DNA of 63,194 bases, the filler included, from Platydemus manokwari (Eukaryota), in the NCBI GenBank assembly GCA_037951405.1. It is 5 parts of 5 records of this genome, joined end to end, with 100 filler letters (N's around TTAATTAATTAA, not from the genome) between each part and the next. Parts side by side here need not be neighbours in the genome. Positions count along the whole stretch, not along the records: positions 52,025 to 63,194 come from JBBMOY010859978.1; 4 more parts are not named here. One strand, 5' to 3'. Position numbers and translations under genes: made by a program. This document shows positions 52,025 through 63,194 of this stretch, piece after piece (the stretch's first letter is position 1; each line of letters opens with the position of its first letter). Under the pieces are notes generated by a model. It was not told the DNA's origin, ran no database searches, and saw nothing but the letters and a program-made list of their open reading frames with translations.

Positions 52025-52160
52025 CAAGAAACATTAACGATGCATGGGGAGAAGGCACAGCTTCCAAACGTACCACACGTAGATGGTTTGCAAAATTTCG
52101 AGTAATAGTCTTTTAAAGTTGCTGTTAGATAACGGCCATTATTTTTGCACTAACCTAATA
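52025..52160 (+). mobile_element. Internally deleted mariner (Hsmar1/cecropia-like) with 3' TIR
   Basis: RNINDAWGEGTASKRTTRRWFAKFR (mariner HTH); TIR aacggccattatttttgcactaacctaa + TA resembles the Hsmar1 TIR. Confidence 0.85.
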
Positions 52161-52702
52161 TAAAAATCTGATTCACACATTTATCGAATTTCAATTCTTT
52201 ATAAACCTTCACATGCCCCTTTTCTTGAAAATCTTTGATTTTCTCTGAATTATTAATTATCTCTGTACCGAATTCTCTAGATATTTATCGATATAAAAAT
52301 TTCTATTTCTTATCCACTTCATATCATTTCTTTATCTTTTTATATCTTCTTTACATCTTCTTTATATCTTATCTGTATTTTCTTCTTATATAGTTTCTCC
52401 GTAGTTTCTTTATATTTTTTTTATGTCTTCTTTATATTTAAACTTTTCCTTCTCTATATTTTCTACACAACTTCTCTATATCTTCTTCACATCTTCTGTA
52501 TACTTCTCTATATCATGGACATTCTCAGAATCGAATTCAAATTTTTGATCGCCTTGGATGTCTCTACTATTTTATAAAGCACACGAACTGAAATGTCGCG
52601 ACACCAAATTATATTTTAATCACAACAATTAAAACAAATCAATATTTTAGAAAAATCCGATTCTAAACTTTTTTGAATTTCAAGTCAGTATAAATGCTCA
52701 CA
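52161..52702 (-). mobile_element. Small non-coding LTR derivative (TRIM-like) with an internal ~11-nt tandem repeat
   Basis: Two direct repeats starting tgtga on the minus strand (at 52702 and 52212); PPT aagaaaagggg immediately before the second; degenerate PBS-like aggcgatc; (tctttatatct)n internal array 52320-52515. Confidence 0.55.
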
Positions 52703-53369
52703 ATGATAACATGTTGCAGCTTCATTGTTTAAATTAATGAAATCCAGCACCTTTTCTAAGGTGTCTATTTGGACACCAATTACTTTGAACTGTAATCTCA
52801 TGCTTAAGTCAAGGGAACCTTGTTTATGGTGCCTCAAATTCATCAACAGTTCAACGTAAATGTTTCTTGAATGTGAGATTAGACAGCTATTAATATTTTA
52901 TATTAAAATCTCGAAATTACTGAAGGATTTTGAATGATCCAATCAACTGTTGGATAAAAATTAGGAAATCGTGATTTAATTAAACGTAATTCTGATCTGC
53001 AAATTTTGCATTTTCATGCGCTTCTCTGTTTATATCACACCCGTTGGTTGAGTTCAAATAAATCTCTCAAACATTATCTGTACATCACTTCCTAATTGCT
53101 TCATACTTCCAAAAGAAGGATGATTTATGAATTGCCATTATTCCTCATTTTCCTTCGCATTTCCTGACTGTCAACAATCGACATTTATTTATGGTTTATG
53201 AAAATGGTATTGCAATCAATATGAAATCGATCATTAAACTGACGATTGTAAATGAAACCGTGTTTTTGAATCATTGAGATTCGTTTTCAAATGACGATAG
53301 CACAAGGGTTCTTTGATCTGAATATTCTAATGGAGAATTGATATTTATGAAATTCATGGCTTCATTTAA

Positions 53370-53945
53370 GAAAAGGGGTCCTTTGACCTACTTTCGTAAT
53401 AATGAATTTTCGCTCGTAAAATAACTTTATAACTTAATTATCGCTATGTTTGATTTATTCATATAATTCAGTTAATATCTCATTTTTAAGATGTCTAGTA
53501 GGGACAAAACATAGTTTTAAAACCAAGTTCCCATTCTAATCACAAATCTTCTATATGGTTATTTGAGTTTTTAAATTTAAATTTATATAATTATAAATCG
53601 CGTTAATTAATTACAGATATGTTTAATAATATCATTGGTTATTTTTATCAAATAATTGTAAAAATTGAGAATATCTCTCAATTTACTTCTAATGTTAAAT
53701 AAAAGGCTTCCTCGCTAATTTTCAATAAATTGCAATTTGACCTACTTTTTTCAATTTTTCAAATCAAATAATAATCATTTTTTTGGATATTTTTAAATTG
53801 TAATGTATTTAATATTTGATTGCAATCAACTAAAACTTTTCTTAAGTACTTAGATAAAAATTCAAAATGTTTTTAAAGAATATAATTAAATAAACTATAT
53901 AGAATTTTGCAATACACATCAAATTTAAAATTTCATTTTAAGACC
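53370..53945 (+). repeat. Dispersed repeat copy (family at 49005-49865)
   Basis: Collinear similarity to 49310-49865. Confidence 0.85.
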
Positions 53946-55711
53946 CTTTATTAACTTTATCCGAAATTTATAATGGCTTTATTTAAATGAAAAAAAACAT
54001 CAAACATGATCAGCTGAAAATCACTACAATTTAATCGTTAGTACGCCACATTGCTAGTGTGCACTTTGAGTACAATCTGAAAGAATTTATCCGTAGTTCT
54101 ATAATAATATAATATAATATAATGCTTATGTAAAAGAAGACACACTTATGAATGTCTTGGTTGACGAAGATTATTCGTGTCATACAAAGCATATACTATT
54201 TTCGAAACCGAAAAATAATTTTTTTCATTTTCAATCATAAATCAATGACGAATGTGTTCGCTAATGCCTTAAACAACCGAATTTCTATGACTAATTAAAA
54301 TGGACCGTGCTCAACAGAACAAATTAATTGCAATTAAAGCCAATTCATTTACTCAGCAGAAAATCTCACAAATCAACATCTCTCACTCAGATATTAGATA
54401 TTTATCGTATATTCAATTTATCAATTTCTCGAGCATGAAAATTTACCTATCAAATTCTTGTAATAATTAATAACATTCCTTGCCAACATAATTGAAATCG
54501 TTCATCGATTAATATCAAATACTATTTTAATTTTTCCTTTCCAATAAGCTTTAGAAATAAAATAAAAATCATCTATGATTTAAAGAAAAATTCTTACCCA
54601 CAAATTTAGACTATCTGAACCGATTTGATATTATAAAATCATTCTTGGTTTTTAATTGATTTTCTGTCATTTATTTTTGCAATTTATTATTAAGTATAAT
54701 ACTAAATTGATTCCAATCATGGCAATAGTAATTATCTTAGTAGTTCAAATTGATCGAACTTAGAATCACTTACTCCAAATAGAAATATCAAATCACTAGG
54801 CTTATAATAAATAATGGTCAAAGTAAAGAAGAGGAAATGATAAATTGGATTAAAATAGTATTATATATACTAATTAGTATTAAAATTCTATTTATTTAAT
54901 CTTTAATAACTTCGATATTTTAAAAATGAGAAACAAGTCATGTTCATGATGCTCTTGAGTATGTTTTAAAGAAGGCAAAATAATCACGGAAACCATGGAA
55001 ATAACCCTCAAATGGCCGATACACACAGCCGTGCGAATCATATAAAAAGTGAATCCTTGTGACATCAAGTGTACACACGTGATAAACCCATAAAATAGGT
55101 TGGATCTCGTGTGCAACCACCAGTCTTTCTTGGTCAGTAACTGTTTGCTTTCGTGACTTTTATGTGATTTACTAGCAACTGGTTCTTATGTTTGTTATCT
55201 TTGTCTAACTTTCGTTCGCTGATCCCGCTGTTCATTGATTATTGATTTGACTGTAGGTGCTATTCTGGGTCGTCATCGTTTAGCAATTTAGTTTTCTGTA
55301 AAATATTGTGATCGCTAATTATAATTTTGATATTCAGCATTTGACATTAATAACAATGATAACTAAAGTGTTTAGAATGTTAATGACTACACATATTTAA
55401 GATTTACTGGTTCATCGGTTTCCAAATTTTATTTTTATATAAGCGTAACTGATAAAAAATAAATTTAAAATAATTTTTAAAAAATCAGAAACAACAATTA
55501 AAAATTTTTGATTCTTTAATTATCAAATTCATTTTATTAATATGCCACCAATATACATATCTGCTCGAAAAATTACACTCTAAAAAGTCTTAACAATATG
55601 AGTGCCCACTTACAGAATAATTTGGTTTTCATTTCAATGTTAATGTATTGAATTAAAAATAATCTTGATTTATTTATTTAATATCGATTTTAAATTATAA
55701 GATTTTAAACA

Positions 55712-58162
55712 ATGAACAACAGAGAAATTATTTGCATTCACATAGGCCAAGCAGGAATACAAATAGGAAATGCCGTTTGGGAATTATTTTCAATAGAACA
55801 TGAACTCGATATGAATGGGTACCAGATTTGTTACTGTCCTTGGCCACTGATAGATAATACTAGCTCTCTCTATTTTGAAATCGGTGACGGTAAATGTAAA
55901 CCTCGGTCCTTGATGATAGATTCGGAACCCTTGGTTGTTGAAGAAATCCGAACAGGATCTTGGAACAAAATGTTTGACAATAGAAGTCTAATTTGTGGTA
56001 AGGAAGATGCTTCCACAATTTTTGCAAAAGGTTACAAGTCATGCGCTAGTGATGTACTCAATGAATCCTTGACGTATTTGCGCATTTTAATAGAGGAAAC
56101 CTGTTCTTTGAATGGATTTTTGATTTTTCATTCTCTTGGAGGAGGTACTGGATCGGGATTAACTAGTAGAATAGCTGAGGTAATTCAAACTGAGACTCCC
56201 AAAAAATCAATGATACATTTAGCGATTGTTCCACCAACAAATAAATCTGGATTTATCGTTGAACCCTATAATGGAGTTCTAGCAACAGCGGCTCTGCTGG
56301 AGTCTTCAAGTCTTATGTGTATGATGGAGAATCAAGCTTTGTATGAAGCCGTCGGTCGCTTTATCGGTCAAAGTAAACTCAGCTTCATTAATATCAACAG
56401 ACACATAGCTCAAATAACGAGCTCTTTGACTACTTCATATCGGTTTTCCAATAAGTTGTCATCCGATTTCTGTGTATTCCAGACTAATTTAGTCCCTTTC
56501 CCAGAAATTCATTTTCCGATATCATCATACGCTCAATCACACGAATCCACTGACATCAATCTCATTCATATGACCAAATCATGTTTTGCTAAAGAAAACA
56601 TGGTTTTGAAATTGGAACCAGATCAAGGATGTTTTATGAGTTGTTGTCTTCTATATCGAGGAATGAATTGTGCTCCAATGGCTATCAACAATGCCATTAA
56701 AACAATCAAATCGGATCCAAATAATAAATTCGTCGACTGGTCTCCAACAAGCTTCAAAGTAGCGATCAATGTTCAGATGCCGGGATTTATTCCCTGTGCT
56801 GATATTCCAGAAACTCGACAATCTCTTTGTCTTTTATCAAACAGTACGGCAATCATTCAAGTGTGGATGAAACTCTTGGAAAATTTTCAGAACCTTTTTT
56901 CTCGGAAAGCCTTTCTCCATTGGTTTGTAGCTGAAGGTGTTGATGAATCGATTTTAAAGGAAGCTGAAAACCGCATTATCGATTTGATTTCCAAATATAA
57001 AGATTTGGAAACAAAAAAAGATCTATCGTACTTAAACAAATCAAAAGCCAGTAAAGAAGTTCCGTCATTTTTGAAGAAGATCGATACCGATTGTCCACCA
57101 ACAGATCAAAAGCGTGATAATCGAACTAATCCAATAGAAACCATTGAGTTAACAAAGAAAGGAGGAAAGAAAAATGAGAATGCCAAACCAAGAGCCAGGG
57201 GTTCCAAAGACGAATCAGTTGATGAAATTAGTGGATCTCACAATCAATATAATATATCATCTAAATACAAAGAATTGAATGGTATAATAACTCTTCCTTC
57301 TCAATCACAATTGATGACATCGCAGTCCCGAAACCCATTAGATTCCATCAGTGAATCCGATTCCCAGGTTGAATCGGTATTTCTCAAATTCAAAAACTCT
57401 CCCAATCAATCATTGGAAAGCATTGGCGTCTTACACGGTTCTAATTTATCAATTGCTTCCAAGTTCAAAGACCGAACTTTTTCTGAAATTTTACATCACA
57501 GTATTCTAGATCTTCCTCATCTGACAAATCCAAATAAATTGTTCTCATTTGACAATTCATTTATCAAAAAACATTTCCTTTCGCAATTTTGTCGTCTGAA
57601 TTCATCACTGAATGGTTCCAGATCTCAAGGGTCCATTTGTAATATCAGAACCCATTCTTGTCAACTAAATTATTCCGTGGAATATCTTAGATGTACTTCT
57701 ATCTTGTATGGTCATTTGGAAGAAATCAAACACAAAAATGAAGAGACGTCTAATGTTCCAGAAATTGAATATCAATCTGTAGATAATAATGATATTAAAA
57801 TAACAATATCGGCAGTCAACGAGCTCCGAGCTTTAATATCTCAGATCCAACCGCTTGAAGCTGTAAAGATGAATTCATCCAAAAGTCTGTTAAATCAAAG
57901 AAAGCACCGTCGAAAATCGGATATGAGGATAGAGATAGCCTGTCAAACGAGTGATCGGAAATCATTGAGTAACAGATTGACTCAGATATTCTATCGTAAA
58001 TCGACAATCACAGCTCCAAAAAAACCACCAATCATATTCCACAAACGTCATTCTTTCCAGAAAAACTTCACTCCAACAAACGTTTTCCCACACCATTCAT
58101 TGATGACTTCATCCCATATTGATTTGACGACTCTTCGTCGAATGGCTTCATTGCGTAATTAA
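55712..58162 (+). CDS. Highly divergent intronless alpha-tubulin with ~385-aa C-terminal extension (816 aa)
   Basis: REIICIHIGQAGIQIGNAVWELF..EH, GKEDA, GFLIFHSLGGGTGSG, VEPYN, FQTNLVPFPEIHFP, CCLLYRG, FVDWSPTSFKV, KAFLHWFVAEG: alpha-type motifs; core ends at ~aa 432 and the ORF stays open to 58162. Confidence 0.93.
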   Translation: MNNREIICIHIGQAGIQIGNAVWELFSIEHELDMNGYQICYCPWPLIDNTSSLYFEIGDGKCKPRSLMIDSEPLVVEEIRTGSWNKMFDNRSLICGKEDASTIFAKGYKSCASDVLNESLTYLRILIEETCSLNGFLIFHSLGGGTGSGLTSRIAEVIQTETPKKSMIHLAIVPPTNKSGFIVEPYNGVLATAALLESSSLMCMMENQALYEAVGRFIGQSKLSFININRHIAQITSSLTTSYRFSNKLSSDFCVFQTNLVPFPEIHFPISSYAQSHESTDINLIHMTKSCFAKENMVLKLEPDQGCFMSCCLLYRGMNCAPMAINNAIKTIKSDPNNKFVDWSPTSFKVAINVQMPGFIPCADIPETRQSLCLLSNSTAIIQVWMKLLENFQNLFSRKAFLHWFVAEGVDESILKEAENRIIDLISKYKDLETKKDLSYLNKSKASKEVPSFLKKIDTDCPPTDQKRDNRTNPIETIELTKKGGKKNENAKPRARGSKDESVDEISGSHNQYNISSKYKELNGIITLPSQSQLMTSQSRNPLDSISESDSQVESVFLKFKNSPNQSLESIGVLHGSNLSIASKFKDRTFSEILHHSILDLPHLTNPNKLFSFDNSFIKKHFLSQFCRLNSSLNGSRSQGSICNIRTHSCQLNYSVEYLRCTSILYGHLEEIKHKNEETSNVPEIEYQSVDNNDIKITISAVNELRALISQIQPLEAVKMNSSKSLLNQRKHRRKSDMRIEIACQTSDRKSLSNRLTQIFYRKSTITAPKKPPIIFHKRHSFQKNFTPTNVFPHHSLMTSSHIDLTTLRRMASLRN

Positions 58163-58302
58163 TATTTTATTTTCATCCTTAATGTTCGATTAAGCATTAC
58201 CATTCGACCATATTTATTCGATCTTGTTATGACATGAAAATCGAAAGGTCAGAAGTATTCAAACAATTTATTATAAAAAATCCTTTCACAAAGCTAATAG
58301 CA

Positions 58303-58333
<31 letters not shown>

Positions 58334-58464
58334 CTAATAATAAAAATAAAAATAACATATTCTGAATATGAAAAGAAAATATTTAAAGTAAACTAACAAA
58401 TTTAAAGACGATTATTAAAATTAATTGTTCTGCTACAGTCAAATTCAAAGCAACAATTCTCTCA

Positions 58465-61400
58465 TTATAAGTAAAGAACGCACTGCATAAACTGAAATAG
58501 AGATAATAATAGAAAAACAATTAAATACATAATTGGAACAAAAGTTCAAACCTCATCTTGCGGAAAGATGGCTTCTCCTTTGCTGGTCTTGGTTTGAACT
58601 TTATAAGTGAGAAAGACTGTTCGTAATCGAATTAAAAGCAAAATATAATCATCGAAAGTAATTATTCCCGCTTTACTGGCATATCTGGTTATAATAGCAC
58701 TAAACACTCGATTGCTCACTTTGAATCCTGAAATGAAATAATAAATAATTATAAATTACTTTGTTTTAATTGGTCATTTTTAATTAAATTTTGTTTAAAA
58801 ACTAGGTTCGACCAAGCTTGACCAAAGCATAAATAGCTTGTTAATACTATGGCTATGATTTCTGCAATTTTTTTTCGTTTGATTCGACACGAAAAATTCT
58901 CTATCAAAATGTGTTGAATGAAATGAGTTTGATCATTAAATCACGAAAACAAAATCAACATTTATTGAGTTCACATACCTTTGGTAGGCCATTACTTGAT
59001 AATTAAAATCCTTTCAAATCTACAGTTAATATAAATCATCTCTAGACCATAAAAACTTTAATATAGTTTTTATCTAAAAAATTGTTTCATAAATGTAATT
59101 TCATTCCTGCCTAACCCAGATTATTAATGGAATCGTTAGCATCCATTTGAGGAAAATATAAAGAAACTACTAATAATTTAATATAATAATTTTAATAAGA
59201 AAATGTTAATTACAATTTTGATTTAATAAGTTTCAAAATAAAAAATAATATTTTGAAATTTTGTTAATATGAAGTAATTATTAAGTAATTTAAATATTTT
59301 TATCTATACCTGATTAAGTTTGATAGCTAAAGCTCTCTAAAAAAAGATTTTTAAGAAAAAAGATTTAAATTTGTTTAAAAAATTGTTTGATTTGTTGGTA
59401 TTAAATAAAAATTAAAAAATAGTAATAATGACTTCTATCTTTGAACCGTCAATTTCAAGCGAAGTAGCTGCTACTAACAATCCACAACACGTAATCCATT
59501 GATATTTTCTTTTAATTCATTACTTGTATCCATAGTTATTTGACCGATCATCACATCATTCTAGATTCGTGAATCATGATTGGTTCGTGTTGCAAATCAA
59601 TAAATCCCTTATAATTGTAATAATATTAAATTTCCTTTGAAATCACCGTTTGAGTTTAACAGAGATATGTCAATCATTAGAGCAAATTATCATCATGTAT
59701 AGTCGATTATTTTTTACCAGATATATTCCGAAATACTTTTACATAAAAGTTACAATTTTAATGGTAAATTGTTAGAATAATGGCATCAAAAGATATTTGA
59801 TCCATACTTTAAAGGATTTTAATGTCAATCTCAATAAAAAGATATATTCATCCCTTCAAATCAATGTTTGTGTCGATCATCAGCAGAAATTAATGAAATA
59901 TCATCGTGTTTTCAACATGCTACCAAGAATTTAGAAGTATTTAAATAACATCTTCAAAAAATCTTTGAAAATACTAACCACTAACAATACAATATTCTAA
60001 TCCAATTTTATCAAAGAAATACTTAAAATCTACTTCAGAATGAAAATGTCAAACAATTTCGAAAATTTAAACCATATCTCGTTTTAAACAAATTAATAAA
60101 ACACAAATCTTATTGTTCACCTATATAGTCGAGCGCTCTTCGAATTTCATAACTGTTAAAATTACCACTGTGATCTTCATCAAACTTTTTAAAGACAGTC
60201 TAAATGAGAATAATATATTGGTAAACTTTGTCACAAATGGTCATTTATTACCTTCCAAAGTCGCAAATCATCCCACAAGGTTTTGAATTCACTGAATCCC
60301 AATCTACCAGATAAATCGGCCTAAATTATTAACACTGCTACATTAGATAAGGCAGAATATTGATAATGGAAAGAAATTTAATAAAATAGGTTAGAGAAAT
60401 ATGAGAATAATTATTTCAGATAGGCCTTTTCTTTTAATTTAATTATGAGCATCAGCAGTGACAGATAAAAATTCTCCCTTCTGTCAAGTTACGAAAAAAT
60501 TAAGTACAATCACGTCGTGGTTATATTTAATTTTTTATATTTTTATTTTCTTATATTAATGAATTGTGTTTGTTGAGCTGAGTTTTGAGGGCTTATTGAT
60601 TTTATTTTTGCCCATTTCATAAGCCACTCCATTAATAAACAGATTTCGTACTCATTCCTATTCATCAGTACTGAATATCATCTCGAATAAATCGTTTAAT
60701 AATTCCTTCATTGGTGGATTCGAACTCTTAATTTCACTCAAATTCACTATCACTCACCAACTGGTTACCGACACTTGTTGTAATTTGGTTTTGTTTACAT
60801 AAGGTGATGTCACTGTAGAATATATAAAATTAATAATGTACAAAAATAAGAAAAGCATAAAAGTTAACAATGAAAGCACTAACATCAATCATAGCTACCA
60901 TACTGCGACACGTTTCCATTGAGAAACCATCGAATTTGAAATCTAAATCATTCCATCATCGTTTTTCTCATTGACTTGATATGAAAAGTCGACTTACTTT
61001 CTGTAATAAAGTAGTCATTAGAAATCGTTAAGTGACTCTATTACTTCACTAACCTCGTCTAAAAGATGCATTAAGAATTTGTTGTAGCTCACCAGCATCA
61101 ATTTCACCATCATCTCCAGCTATTGTTTTAAAAGCCGCTTGCAAACGTTCGGTATTCCGGTCTTCTTCATTCTTTACTTCTGGAGGAAGTTCCTTATTCC
61201 ACTTAATATCATAAACAAGAATAAAATGAGTGTGGTTATCTTTAAATAAATAAGAATTATAGTTTCAGTTATTAGAAACCTTATTTTATAAAAAAAAACC
61301 GTAAGTGGTCATATTTCATGTAGATGATGAGATACTCTCACCTGAAAACTAAAGAAATACCCAAAAATTCACATCTAGCTCAATGTGAATAACTTTAATA

Positions 61401-62601
61401 TATTATTGAAGAGAAATATTGAATGGCTCTTGGCTCTAAACTCAATACTCTCAATTGAAGCTTATGAGTTTAGTACTCTATATAGAACCGTTCGGCTACA
61501 ATGCACTTCTATCGGCAAAAATTCGAAATCGATAAATAAGAGTTAAGGGTTATCAATTTTACACGACTGTTTTATGGAAAAAAATATTGAAAAGATATTT
61601 TTAATTCCCTTAATTCTCTCTAATAATAGATAAAATTATTAGATTCCTTTATCCTGTACTCAATACCCGATCTGTCTCTATACGACAAAAACTAATCAGA
61701 TCGGCTAGATAGAAACATTTTCGGTACTGATATCATTATTATCATTCGATAAACCAGAAGGAAAATTCCAACATTTTCATGCCAGAAAATTGAATTGCTT
61801 TTCTGCCTTTCACAATATGATTGACGTTTCCTTTGAGCTCCATTAAAATCGAATCTGATTATTAGAGAATGATTTTTGCTTCATTCCTTCAATTTTTAAA
61901 ATTAATCTACTGATATTTTCTTTGTTCAATAAAAGATTTTTATCTCATTTTGACATGAAATATGTTGGTGGATTGTTTTTTTTTTAATTTTTTTTGTTTT
62001 TTAAGATTTAAGTCTTTTTTAAATAATGGAAAATTGTGAAATTATTTTAAACAGACTTTTGAACAGATAATAAACCCATCTGACTACTCTATTAAATAAT
62101 CAAGTTATCATCAACAAATAATTATAATTATAATATTATTATTATGACAATCATTCTTTTTCTTATACTGGTATTACATAATAGGTGATTTTGGTTTATT
62201 CTTTTATAAAAGAACTAATTCAAATTTATTAGAGAAATAACATATTATCATAAAAAGTTATATTTTATACAAAAATATTATAATGGAGATGTAATTACCT
62301 TTGGAATTGTTATTTCAGTTTTCTGGTCTAATTGGCTGTTACAAAAATTACTTCATCAAAATAATAACAATATAAATCAAAACTTCGAGCTATATTCTTT
62401 CTCTGAAAAGATCCGTAATAAAAATTTTGCTTCTTCCCCAGGATTGAAAGTCGATGGAACAATGGCATAATCTCCAACAGGTAATTTATGTCGACCGCAA
62501 ATTTCTCGAAGATTAATAAATGCTGGCGATTTTGTATAGGAAGAATTGGTCCGAAAGTAACGGGTGTCAAGAAGAGTGGTATTATAAACGCCACCTTTCA
62601 A
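58465..62601 (-). CDS. Classical calpain, 3' part (domain III end + penta-EF-hand); exons 62384-62601, 62299-62335, 61054-61201, 60884-60942, 60252-60320, 60121-60199, 58552-58727, 58465-58491; 5' exons outside the window
   Basis: [117 protein letters not shown]; all phases consistent. Confidence 0.95.
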
Positions 62602-63109
62602 CTGAAAAACCAAAAAGCCTTTATGATTTTCATGTTCTTAACAACATTATATTCTAGTAGTCTTTTATTTTCAAATCACACTTATATTTTAAAGATTTTG
62701 ATGTATTAAATATATAATTAGGAAATTTAATAATAGATTAAATAATAATAATAATAATTATTATTATAGATTTTGATTTCCTAAGTTTTTGTCCTGTCGA
62801 AAAAGAATACCGTATCATTTACGTTGTCATGGTTGAATGAAAATGAACTTAATTATTTAACTATTTTAACTATTCTCACAAAAAATTATCATAGATCTTC
62901 TTCAAAAGTTCAAAATTGAAAATAGACATTTCTTTTCAAAATATCCTCAACACGTATTTTCAATTTATTCTCCCTGTTTAAAAAAGTTTGAAGATGTAGA
63001 TTTATTTTTGAAATAATATGATTTTCATATCAGATTCTAGATTACTGAAAAATACTTTTGGGTTTTGTGCAGCTAAATCAGCAACTATTTATTAAAACAA
63101 CCCTTTACA

Positions 63110-63194
63110 ATATTAGGTACCACGTTGAGTCAAAAGTTATTCATGTTTTTATGCAGGTATTTTATTAACACAAATTGTTATAACGCTGAACATA
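63110..63194. repeat. Inverted copy of the repeat at 32927-33005
   Basis: Exact reverse-complement match over ~65 nt. Confidence 0.9.

Follow-up and report, generated by a model that had tools for sequence, protein, structure and literature searches.

Introduction

Few eukaryotic proteins are as conserved as alpha-tubulin, whose Glu254 and acidic, modifiable tail are treated as near-universal. The C-terminal tail and Lys40 (K40) carry tyrosination, glutamylation, glycylation and acetylation marks. Glu254 (E254) is the conserved catalytic residue of alpha-tubulin for the hydrolysis of the guanosine triphosphate (GTP) of beta-tubulin, and tubulin engineered to carry E254A is deficient in GTPase activity, shows strong nucleation and assembles into stable microtubules (PMC7018511). 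Natural divergent isotypes have been described in Tetrahymena, namely the beta-like BLT1 and BLT4 and three alpha-like tubulins, which are 56–65% identical to canonical tubulins, carry changes in the GTP site and interfaces, have no polyglutamylation/polyglycylation motif and occur in restricted non-axonemal arrays (PMC3382179). Here, we describe an alpha-tubulin gene of Platydemus manokwari in which a long, net-basic extension stands where the acidic tail would normally be. The gene is located in a window of 63,194 nucleotides (nt), i.e., the whole stretch of DNA under study, which joins five parts of the GCA_037951405.1 assembly; the analyzed piece comprises positions 52025–63194 of the window (11 kb; JBBMOY010859978.1), and all coordinates are given along the window.

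In the open-access literature text, no natural alpha-tubulin combining E254 loss with a basic extension of approximately 400 residues was found to be described. The same text yielded no planarian or flatworm tubulin of such kind and no natural alpha isotype without E254.

The Open Reading Frame and Its C-Terminal Extension

The sole long open reading frame (ORF) of the piece consists of 816 codons on the + strand (Table 1). Amino acids (aa) 4–431 of the encoded protein align end to end with alpha-tubulins without a break, which indicates an uninterrupted coding sequence. An earlier analysis made from the DNA alone (hereafter, the sequence-only reading) had proposed an intronless divergent copy of alpha-tubulin at this locus, with a frame that stays open for ~1150 nt past the tubulin core, and both claims were borne out. 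The tail frame (57008–58159, 384 codons) contains no stop codons, while the remaining five frames contain 29, 32, 27, 18, and 20. Since 26 stops were expected in the tail frame according to composition-matched shuffles, the probability of finding none is ~5e-12. In the flanks, the longest open run is 98 codons. In addition, the GC content of the tail (0.355) is like that of the core (0.373) and unlike that of the flanks (0.269). The analysis thus confirmed an ORF with a tail that is open far beyond chance.

Past the end of helix H12 (...DLISKYKDL, aa 424–432), the protein has neither a Glu-rich tail nor a run of Glu, and it does not terminate in Tyr or Phe, in agreement with the sequence-only reading, which had noted the missing EEY tail. 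For comparison, the last 15 residues average 43% Asp+Glu in 51 canonical-length hits. In place of the acidic tail stands the net-basic, Ser-rich extension that had been anticipated, with 14% Ser, 15% Lys+Arg, a net charge of +19 and an isoelectric point (pI) of 9.6.

The search with the core found a second protein of the same layout, P0034 (850 aa; UniParc UPI0006084C13; a single-member cluster obtained via MetaClust), in which an alpha-tubulin core is followed by a long tail of 418 residues (Ser 18%, Lys+Arg 14%, net charge +8, pI 9.0). The cores of the two proteins are 72% identical and the tails 28% identical; the junction between core and tail is conserved (DLETKKDLS vs DLNSNKDLT). Smith–Waterman comparison of the tails gave a score of 170 against 57 ± 9 in 500 shuffles (z = 12). 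Judging by this score, the two tails are clearly homologous, and the prospect that the tail would lack conservation, which had been raised together with the sequence-only reading, did not materialize. Since the two proteins share the layout and have homologous tails, the fusion predates their split; since both tails stayed open despite a turnover of more than 70% of the residues, translation through the tail must have been under selection. At the sequence level, this comparison shows that the fusion is ancestral to the window protein and P0034 and that both of its halves have been kept open by selection.

Remodelling of the Tubulin Core

According to the Pfam analysis, the core contains the Tubulin (PF00091, 6.8e-46) and Tubulin_C (PF03953, 6.2e-25) domains, both of which pass the curated cut-offs. 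In the PDB sequence search, all of the best 60 of 170 matches were alpha-tubulins (E ~1e-110 to 1e-106). The AlphaFold program, when run with a two-sequence alignment, gave a confidence (predicted local distance difference test, pLDDT) of 28 even for the core, and a 53-sequence alignment was used instead, which gave a core pLDDT of 80–93. Foldseek comparison of this core model returned alpha chains at a template modelling (TM) score of 0.94–0.96 and a root-mean-square deviation (rmsd) of ~2 Å. The alpha-class assignment rests on these PDB and Foldseek matches.

The core was compared with 12 canonical animal and fungal alpha-tubulins. The nucleotide signatures T1 GQAG, T4 GGGTGSG, D69/E71, N206 and N228 are kept, with exceptions in the T3 loop (N101 to T and N102 to I), and the long blocks FQTNLVP, FVDW.PT.FK and LSNST are kept as well. 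By its sequence, the protein is a member of the alpha-tubulin fold and class, yet it fails four class-typical features.

Among the 12 canonical sequences, 191 columns are invariant. Of these columns, 81 are changed in the window protein, in P0034 or in both; the two proteins are both changed in 64, with the same replacement in 52 of the 64. The 52 identical derived replacements at otherwise invariant sites point to a new constraint shared by the two sequences and not to decay. The changes in the core, namely the loss of the catalytic E254, of part of the M-loop and of the acidic ridge of H12, had been missed by the sequence-only reading. Valine takes the place of E254 in both proteins (Table 1); of the 284 tubulin cores contained in 200 database hits, 279 have Glu at this position. 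In the T7 loop, N249 is replaced by Ser in both proteins; in the T3 loop, N101 is Thr or Ser and N102 is Ile across the two; the T5 loop is remodelled in both. The M-loop carries the same deletion in the two sequences, and the changes in H12 (E417I/V, D424R, E429I, D431K and E433K/N) extend across both.

The only other E254 exceptions among the 284 cores are three alpha-tubulin-like models of the dinoflagellate Polarella glacialis (P0007, P0110 and P0133), which have Trp at this position (FTVWFQTNLVP). Here too, the catalytic glutamate may have been lost naturally.

The K40 acetylation loop is replaced by a segment without lysine at the K40 position, whose counterpart in P0034, QLCYCPWPLVDNT, is near-identical; the Cys/Trp/Pro-rich motif Q(I/L)CYCPWPL(I/V)DNT is common to both. 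Most of the core differs more between the two proteins than this motif does, a pattern suggestive of a particular function of the segment in the lumen or in folding. The sequence-only reading had also proposed that the protein escapes the tubulin code. This is supported by the alignment, in which the sequence features for tyrosination, glutamylation and glycylation are all absent, as is K40.

In the phylogenetic tree, the window protein and P0034 formed a highly supported separate clade (100/100) on a branch of ~5 substitutions per site from the canonical alpha-tubulins. The canonical sequences collapsed into a tight polytomy, and the origin of the clade within alpha-tubulins, including those of flatworms, is for this reason left undecided by the tree. 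A core-profile search among proteins of 238–756 aa found nothing above 44% identity and no tail-less, truncated or intermediate relatives.

Composition and Conserved Parts of the Extension

As for the extension, its positive charge accumulates towards the C-terminus, within the last ~100 residues, both in the window protein and in P0034, which makes this part a candidate for binding to the microtubule surface. Both tails lie on the disordered side of the charge–hydropathy boundary, and in the AlphaFold model the pLDDT of the whole tail is <50; the tail is predicted to be disordered. Four short islands are conserved between the two tails (Table 1), and the low-confidence helices of the model coincide with them; the islands are probably helical. 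An RRKS motif occurs once in each tail.

The Cys/His cluster pointed out in the sequence-only reading is present in the window protein, although it does not stand as a conserved metal site: of its residues, P0034 retains C643 and H648 alone, and LRCTS is deleted there. A zinc-binding reading of this cluster was considered and rejected, and a metal-binding module is unlikely given that so few of these residues are conserved.

Similarity searches with the tail returned no relative other than P0034. An exhaustive search with a two-tail hidden Markov model against 1.84 billion representatives returned P0034 alone, the ESM Atlas feature search gave no usable match, and the word-index search among proteins of 449–1428 aa returned nothing, not even the query itself.

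Table 1. Features of the tubulin locus and its surroundings (window coordinates; aa numbering of the window protein)
Feature	Position	Strand	Evidence or remark
Complete single-exon coding sequence, 816 codons and TAA stop	55712–58162	+	In-frame stop two codons upstream of the ATG
Divergent alpha-tubulin core, aa 1–432; GQAG and GGGTGSG kept	55712–57007	+	Pfam, PDB, AlphaFold2, Foldseek
K40 acetylation loop replaced by QICYCPWPLIDNT (aa 38–50); no lysine at the K40 position	55823–55861	+	Alignment
V255 codon at the catalytic Glu254 position (DFCVFQTN vs DLTEFQTN)	56474–56476	+	Alignment; same in P0034
Shortened M-loop (AQSHESTD), 5 residues below canonical; A281, H283 and E284 absent	56531–56554	+	Alignment; same deletion in P0034
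Helix H12, acidic ridge neutralized or reversed (E417I, D424R, E429I, D431K, E433K)	56945–57010	+	Alignment; predicted helix 412–433
C-terminal extension, 384 residues (aa 433–816), Ser/Lys/Asn-rich, no known domain	57008–58159	+	ORF, Pfam, PDB, AlphaFold2
Tail island 1, QYNISSKYKELNGI (QYNISSKY.KELNGI), aa 512–525, 9/15 columns identical	57245–57286	+	Tail alignment; low-confidence helix 517–523
Tail island 2, FSEILHHSILDL, aa 590–601, 9/12 identical, amphipathic-helix-like spacing	57479–57514	+	Tail alignment; low-confidence helix 590–598
Tail island 3, KHFLSQFCRLNS, aa 620–631, 8/12 identical	57569–57604	+	Tail alignment; low-confidence helix 616–630
Most basic part of the tail, aa 713–816, net charge ~+16	57848–58159	+	Charge count
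RRKS, basophilic-kinase-type site, once per tail, shortly upstream of island 4	57908–57919	+	Motif scan
Tail island 4, KSLSNRLTQIF, aa 750–760, 7/11 identical	57959–57991	+	Tail alignment; low-confidence helix 752–760
Two overlapping AATAAA poly(A)-signal-like hexamers, 177–183 nt past the stop	58339–58350	+	Consensus match only
Weak CAPN13-like C-terminal EF-hand exon, E 0.099	58549–58719	−	Weak match
Calpain exon, Calpain_III E 2.9e-16	62380–62613	−	Domain match

Genomic Surroundings

A calpain gene is located downstream on the minus strand and converges on the tubulin gene, with the two stops ~385 bp apart. This gene is split into exons, and the coding sequence of the tubulin is intronless, as expected of a retrogene. 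The sequence-only reading had suggested a germline retrogene on this basis, with a speculative link to flatworm sperm cortical microtubules or the 9+'1' axoneme. The 3′ untranslated regions of the two genes may overlap in antisense orientation. The hexamer TTTATT occurs at 58166, 58213 and 58267, between the convergent genes.

In addition, an (AAT)n microsatellite of 17.7 copies (58303–58355) begins 140 nt past the tubulin stop, with the AATAAA hexamers directly after it. Either an AT-rich repeat of the usual kind or what is left of the degraded poly(A) of a retrocopy could account for the tract, which is not diagnostic.

Interpretation of the Locus

The locus contains an intact gene for a lineage-restricted alpha-tubulin paralog. 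With a probability of about 0.55, it is best read as a lineage-specific paralog kept by selection, for which we propose the role of a non-dynamic subunit with a built-in basic arm. The core would still bind nucleotide, since T1, T2, T4, N206 and N228 are kept, and it would probably pair with a beta-tubulin. Since Glu254 is replaced by Val and N249 by Ser, the core would be unable to trigger hydrolysis of the GTP in the underlying beta subunit, and the lattice would remain GTP-like and stable where the protein is incorporated, in the manner of the engineered E254A mutant. Altered lateral contacts and poor binding of the usual motors and microtubule-associated proteins (MAPs) would follow from the shorter M-loop and the neutralized H12 ridge, while the absence of K40, of a Glu-rich tail and of a terminal Tyr would hide the protein from the tubulin-code enzymes. 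The extension would exit at the usual site of the acidic tail and form a built-in projection arm. Its basic end might bind the acidic tails of neighbouring canonical tubulins, leading to cross-linking or bundling; the four short helical islands might dock partners, and the Ser-rich sequence together with RRKS might allow control by phosphorylation.

A further step, tentative and on balance rather unlikely, would be to regard the protein as a naturally GTPase-dead, modification-blind alpha-tubulin with a covalent MAP-like arm that builds or caps a hyperstable array, e.g., sperm cortical microtubules or another specialized structure. If this were true, the engineered E254A "GTP-lattice" tubulin would have an equivalent in nature, and the gene would be the first case of a tubulin–MAP fusion.

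More generally, a selected natural gene that has lost both Glu254 and the acidic tail and gained ~400 basic residues would mean that animals can build the stability and the surface chemistry of microtubules into tubulin itself instead of relying on MAPs and tail modifications. The protein would also offer a natural hydrolysis-deficient tubulin for the study of the GTP-like lattice. With only four short conserved islands, the tail is tractable for the mapping of partners.

A number of observations weigh against the reading as a lattice subunit with a basic arm. Many interface residues are changed (T3, T5, T7, M-loop, H10 and H11–H12), so that, judging by the alignment, dimerization with beta-tubulin or entry into the lattice is not assured. 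P0034 could be paralogous and not orthologous to the window protein, and its sequence may stem from nothing more than gene prediction on a genome. The basic patches listed in the sequence-only reading are present in the window protein; most of them are not conserved position by position, the TKKGGKKNENAKPRAR patch has no counterpart in P0034, and the same is true of the C-terminal LRRMASLRN. The MAP-like character proposed there holds for the basic charge and does not hold for known modules: a regular-expression scan of both tails found neither the PGGG/KxGS repeat of tau/MAP2 nor SxIP, the Pfam search with both tails gave sub-threshold chance matches only (CBM32, 0.11; DUF5131, 0.0017), and the PDB search with the tail profile gave no matches at E ≤ 1. 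Since the conserved parts are the four islands, RRKS and the basic last ~100 residues, the term "MAP-like" is a charge-based analogy only. The low pLDDT of the tail may reflect only the depth of the alignment in this region, which consists of two sequences. Finally, the search of sequencing runs found no RNA run containing the locus; one run, of unspecified kind, contains it.

The rival explanation that survives best, although we regard it as unlikely, is that of a tubulin-fold protein working off the microtubule wall, i.e., a soluble or end-bound factor in which the tail motifs are the real function. It could be a minus-end or seam cap, a decoy that binds beta-tubulin or chaperones, or a scaffolding component of a structure specific to centrioles, rootlets or sperm; outside microtubules, it would be a rare instance of a tubulin fold newly co-opted as a scaffold. 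The extent of change in the core (81 of the 191 invariant positions), which affects both longitudinal faces (T3 N101/N102, T5, T7 N249 and H8 E254), the lateral M-loop with its 5-residue deletion and the outer H11–H12 surface, is consistent with such a role, as are the very long branch and the short conserved islands of the tail, which are typical of docking motifs. On the other hand, T1, T2, T4, N206 and the blocks FQTNLVP, FVDW.PT.FK and LSNST are kept, and the model superposes on lattice alpha-tubulin with an rmsd of ~2 Å. Taken together, the results fit lattice and off-lattice roles alike.

It is improbable that the tail is absent from the mature tubulin, as would be the case if splicing or polyadenylation near the end of H12 yielded a tail-less protein of ~435 residues. 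The downstream frame would then be translated separately, belong to a minor isoform or derive from a former neighbouring gene with a lost stop. The only donor-like site near the core/tail junction, GTAAAG at 57051, is compatible with this, and the identity falls from ~60–80% to ~20–30% exactly at the end of H12. Against it, core and tail lie in one frame without a stop at the junction in both the window protein and P0034, the first residues of the junction are conserved, and neither tail contains a conserved internal Met. Scanning of the + strand of the piece downstream of the ORF revealed no acidic mini-exon that could serve as an alternative end, and the convergent calpain gene, so close to the stop, leaves no room for further 3′ exons of the tubulin.

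The locus can hardly be explained by a processed pseudogene in decay or by an error of the assembly, such as the indel hiding a stop after the core that the sequence-only reading had itself considered. Such an origin would suit an intronless, highly divergent copy with a compositionally simple tail in an AT-rich genome, but 816 codons are intact where the flanks stay open for at most 98, no frameshift could rescue a different reading of the tail because the alternative forward frames hold 29 and 32 stops, P0034 keeps the junction and a homologous open tail, 52 derived replacements at otherwise invariant sites are shared, and one independent sequencing run, which may be the source sample itself, contains 99% of the sampled locus words.

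Comparison with Known Systems

Returning to the reading of the gene as a selected alpha-tubulin paralog, its product is closest to canonical alpha-tubulin (e.g., TUBA1A/1B and animal or fungal alpha chains), with which it shares the two Pfam domains, ~40% identity in BLAST and a TM score of 0.94–0.96. The GQAG and GGGTGSG signatures, D69/E71, N206, N228 and the S7–H8 and S9 blocks are common to both. The differences consist in E254V, N249S, the replaced N101/N102, the altered K40 loop and M-loop and the neutral H12 ridge; in addition, the acidic tail of 12–20 residues in canonical alpha-tubulin corresponds here to 384 residues of basic, Ser-rich sequence.

The engineered human alpha-tubulins E254A, E254D and E254N lack the catalytic glutamate in the same way. 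However, these are single-site laboratory changes, whereas the gene described here is natural and combines the loss, with its predicted effect on hydrolysis, with a new tail and many further changes at the interfaces.

The noncanonical isotypes of Tetrahymena resemble the window protein in their divergent GTP-site and interface residues and in having no C-terminal modification motif. They differ in their independent ciliate origin, the characterized ones are beta-like, and their tails are only 15–30 residues longer than canonical.

As for MAPs of the tau/MAP2/MAP4 type, they are, like the tail described here, long, of low complexity, net-basic, Ser-rich and probably disordered, with basophilic kinase sites. 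They are separate proteins, whereas this tail, which has neither PGGG, KxGS or SxIP motifs nor profile similarity to them, is fused to a tubulin core.

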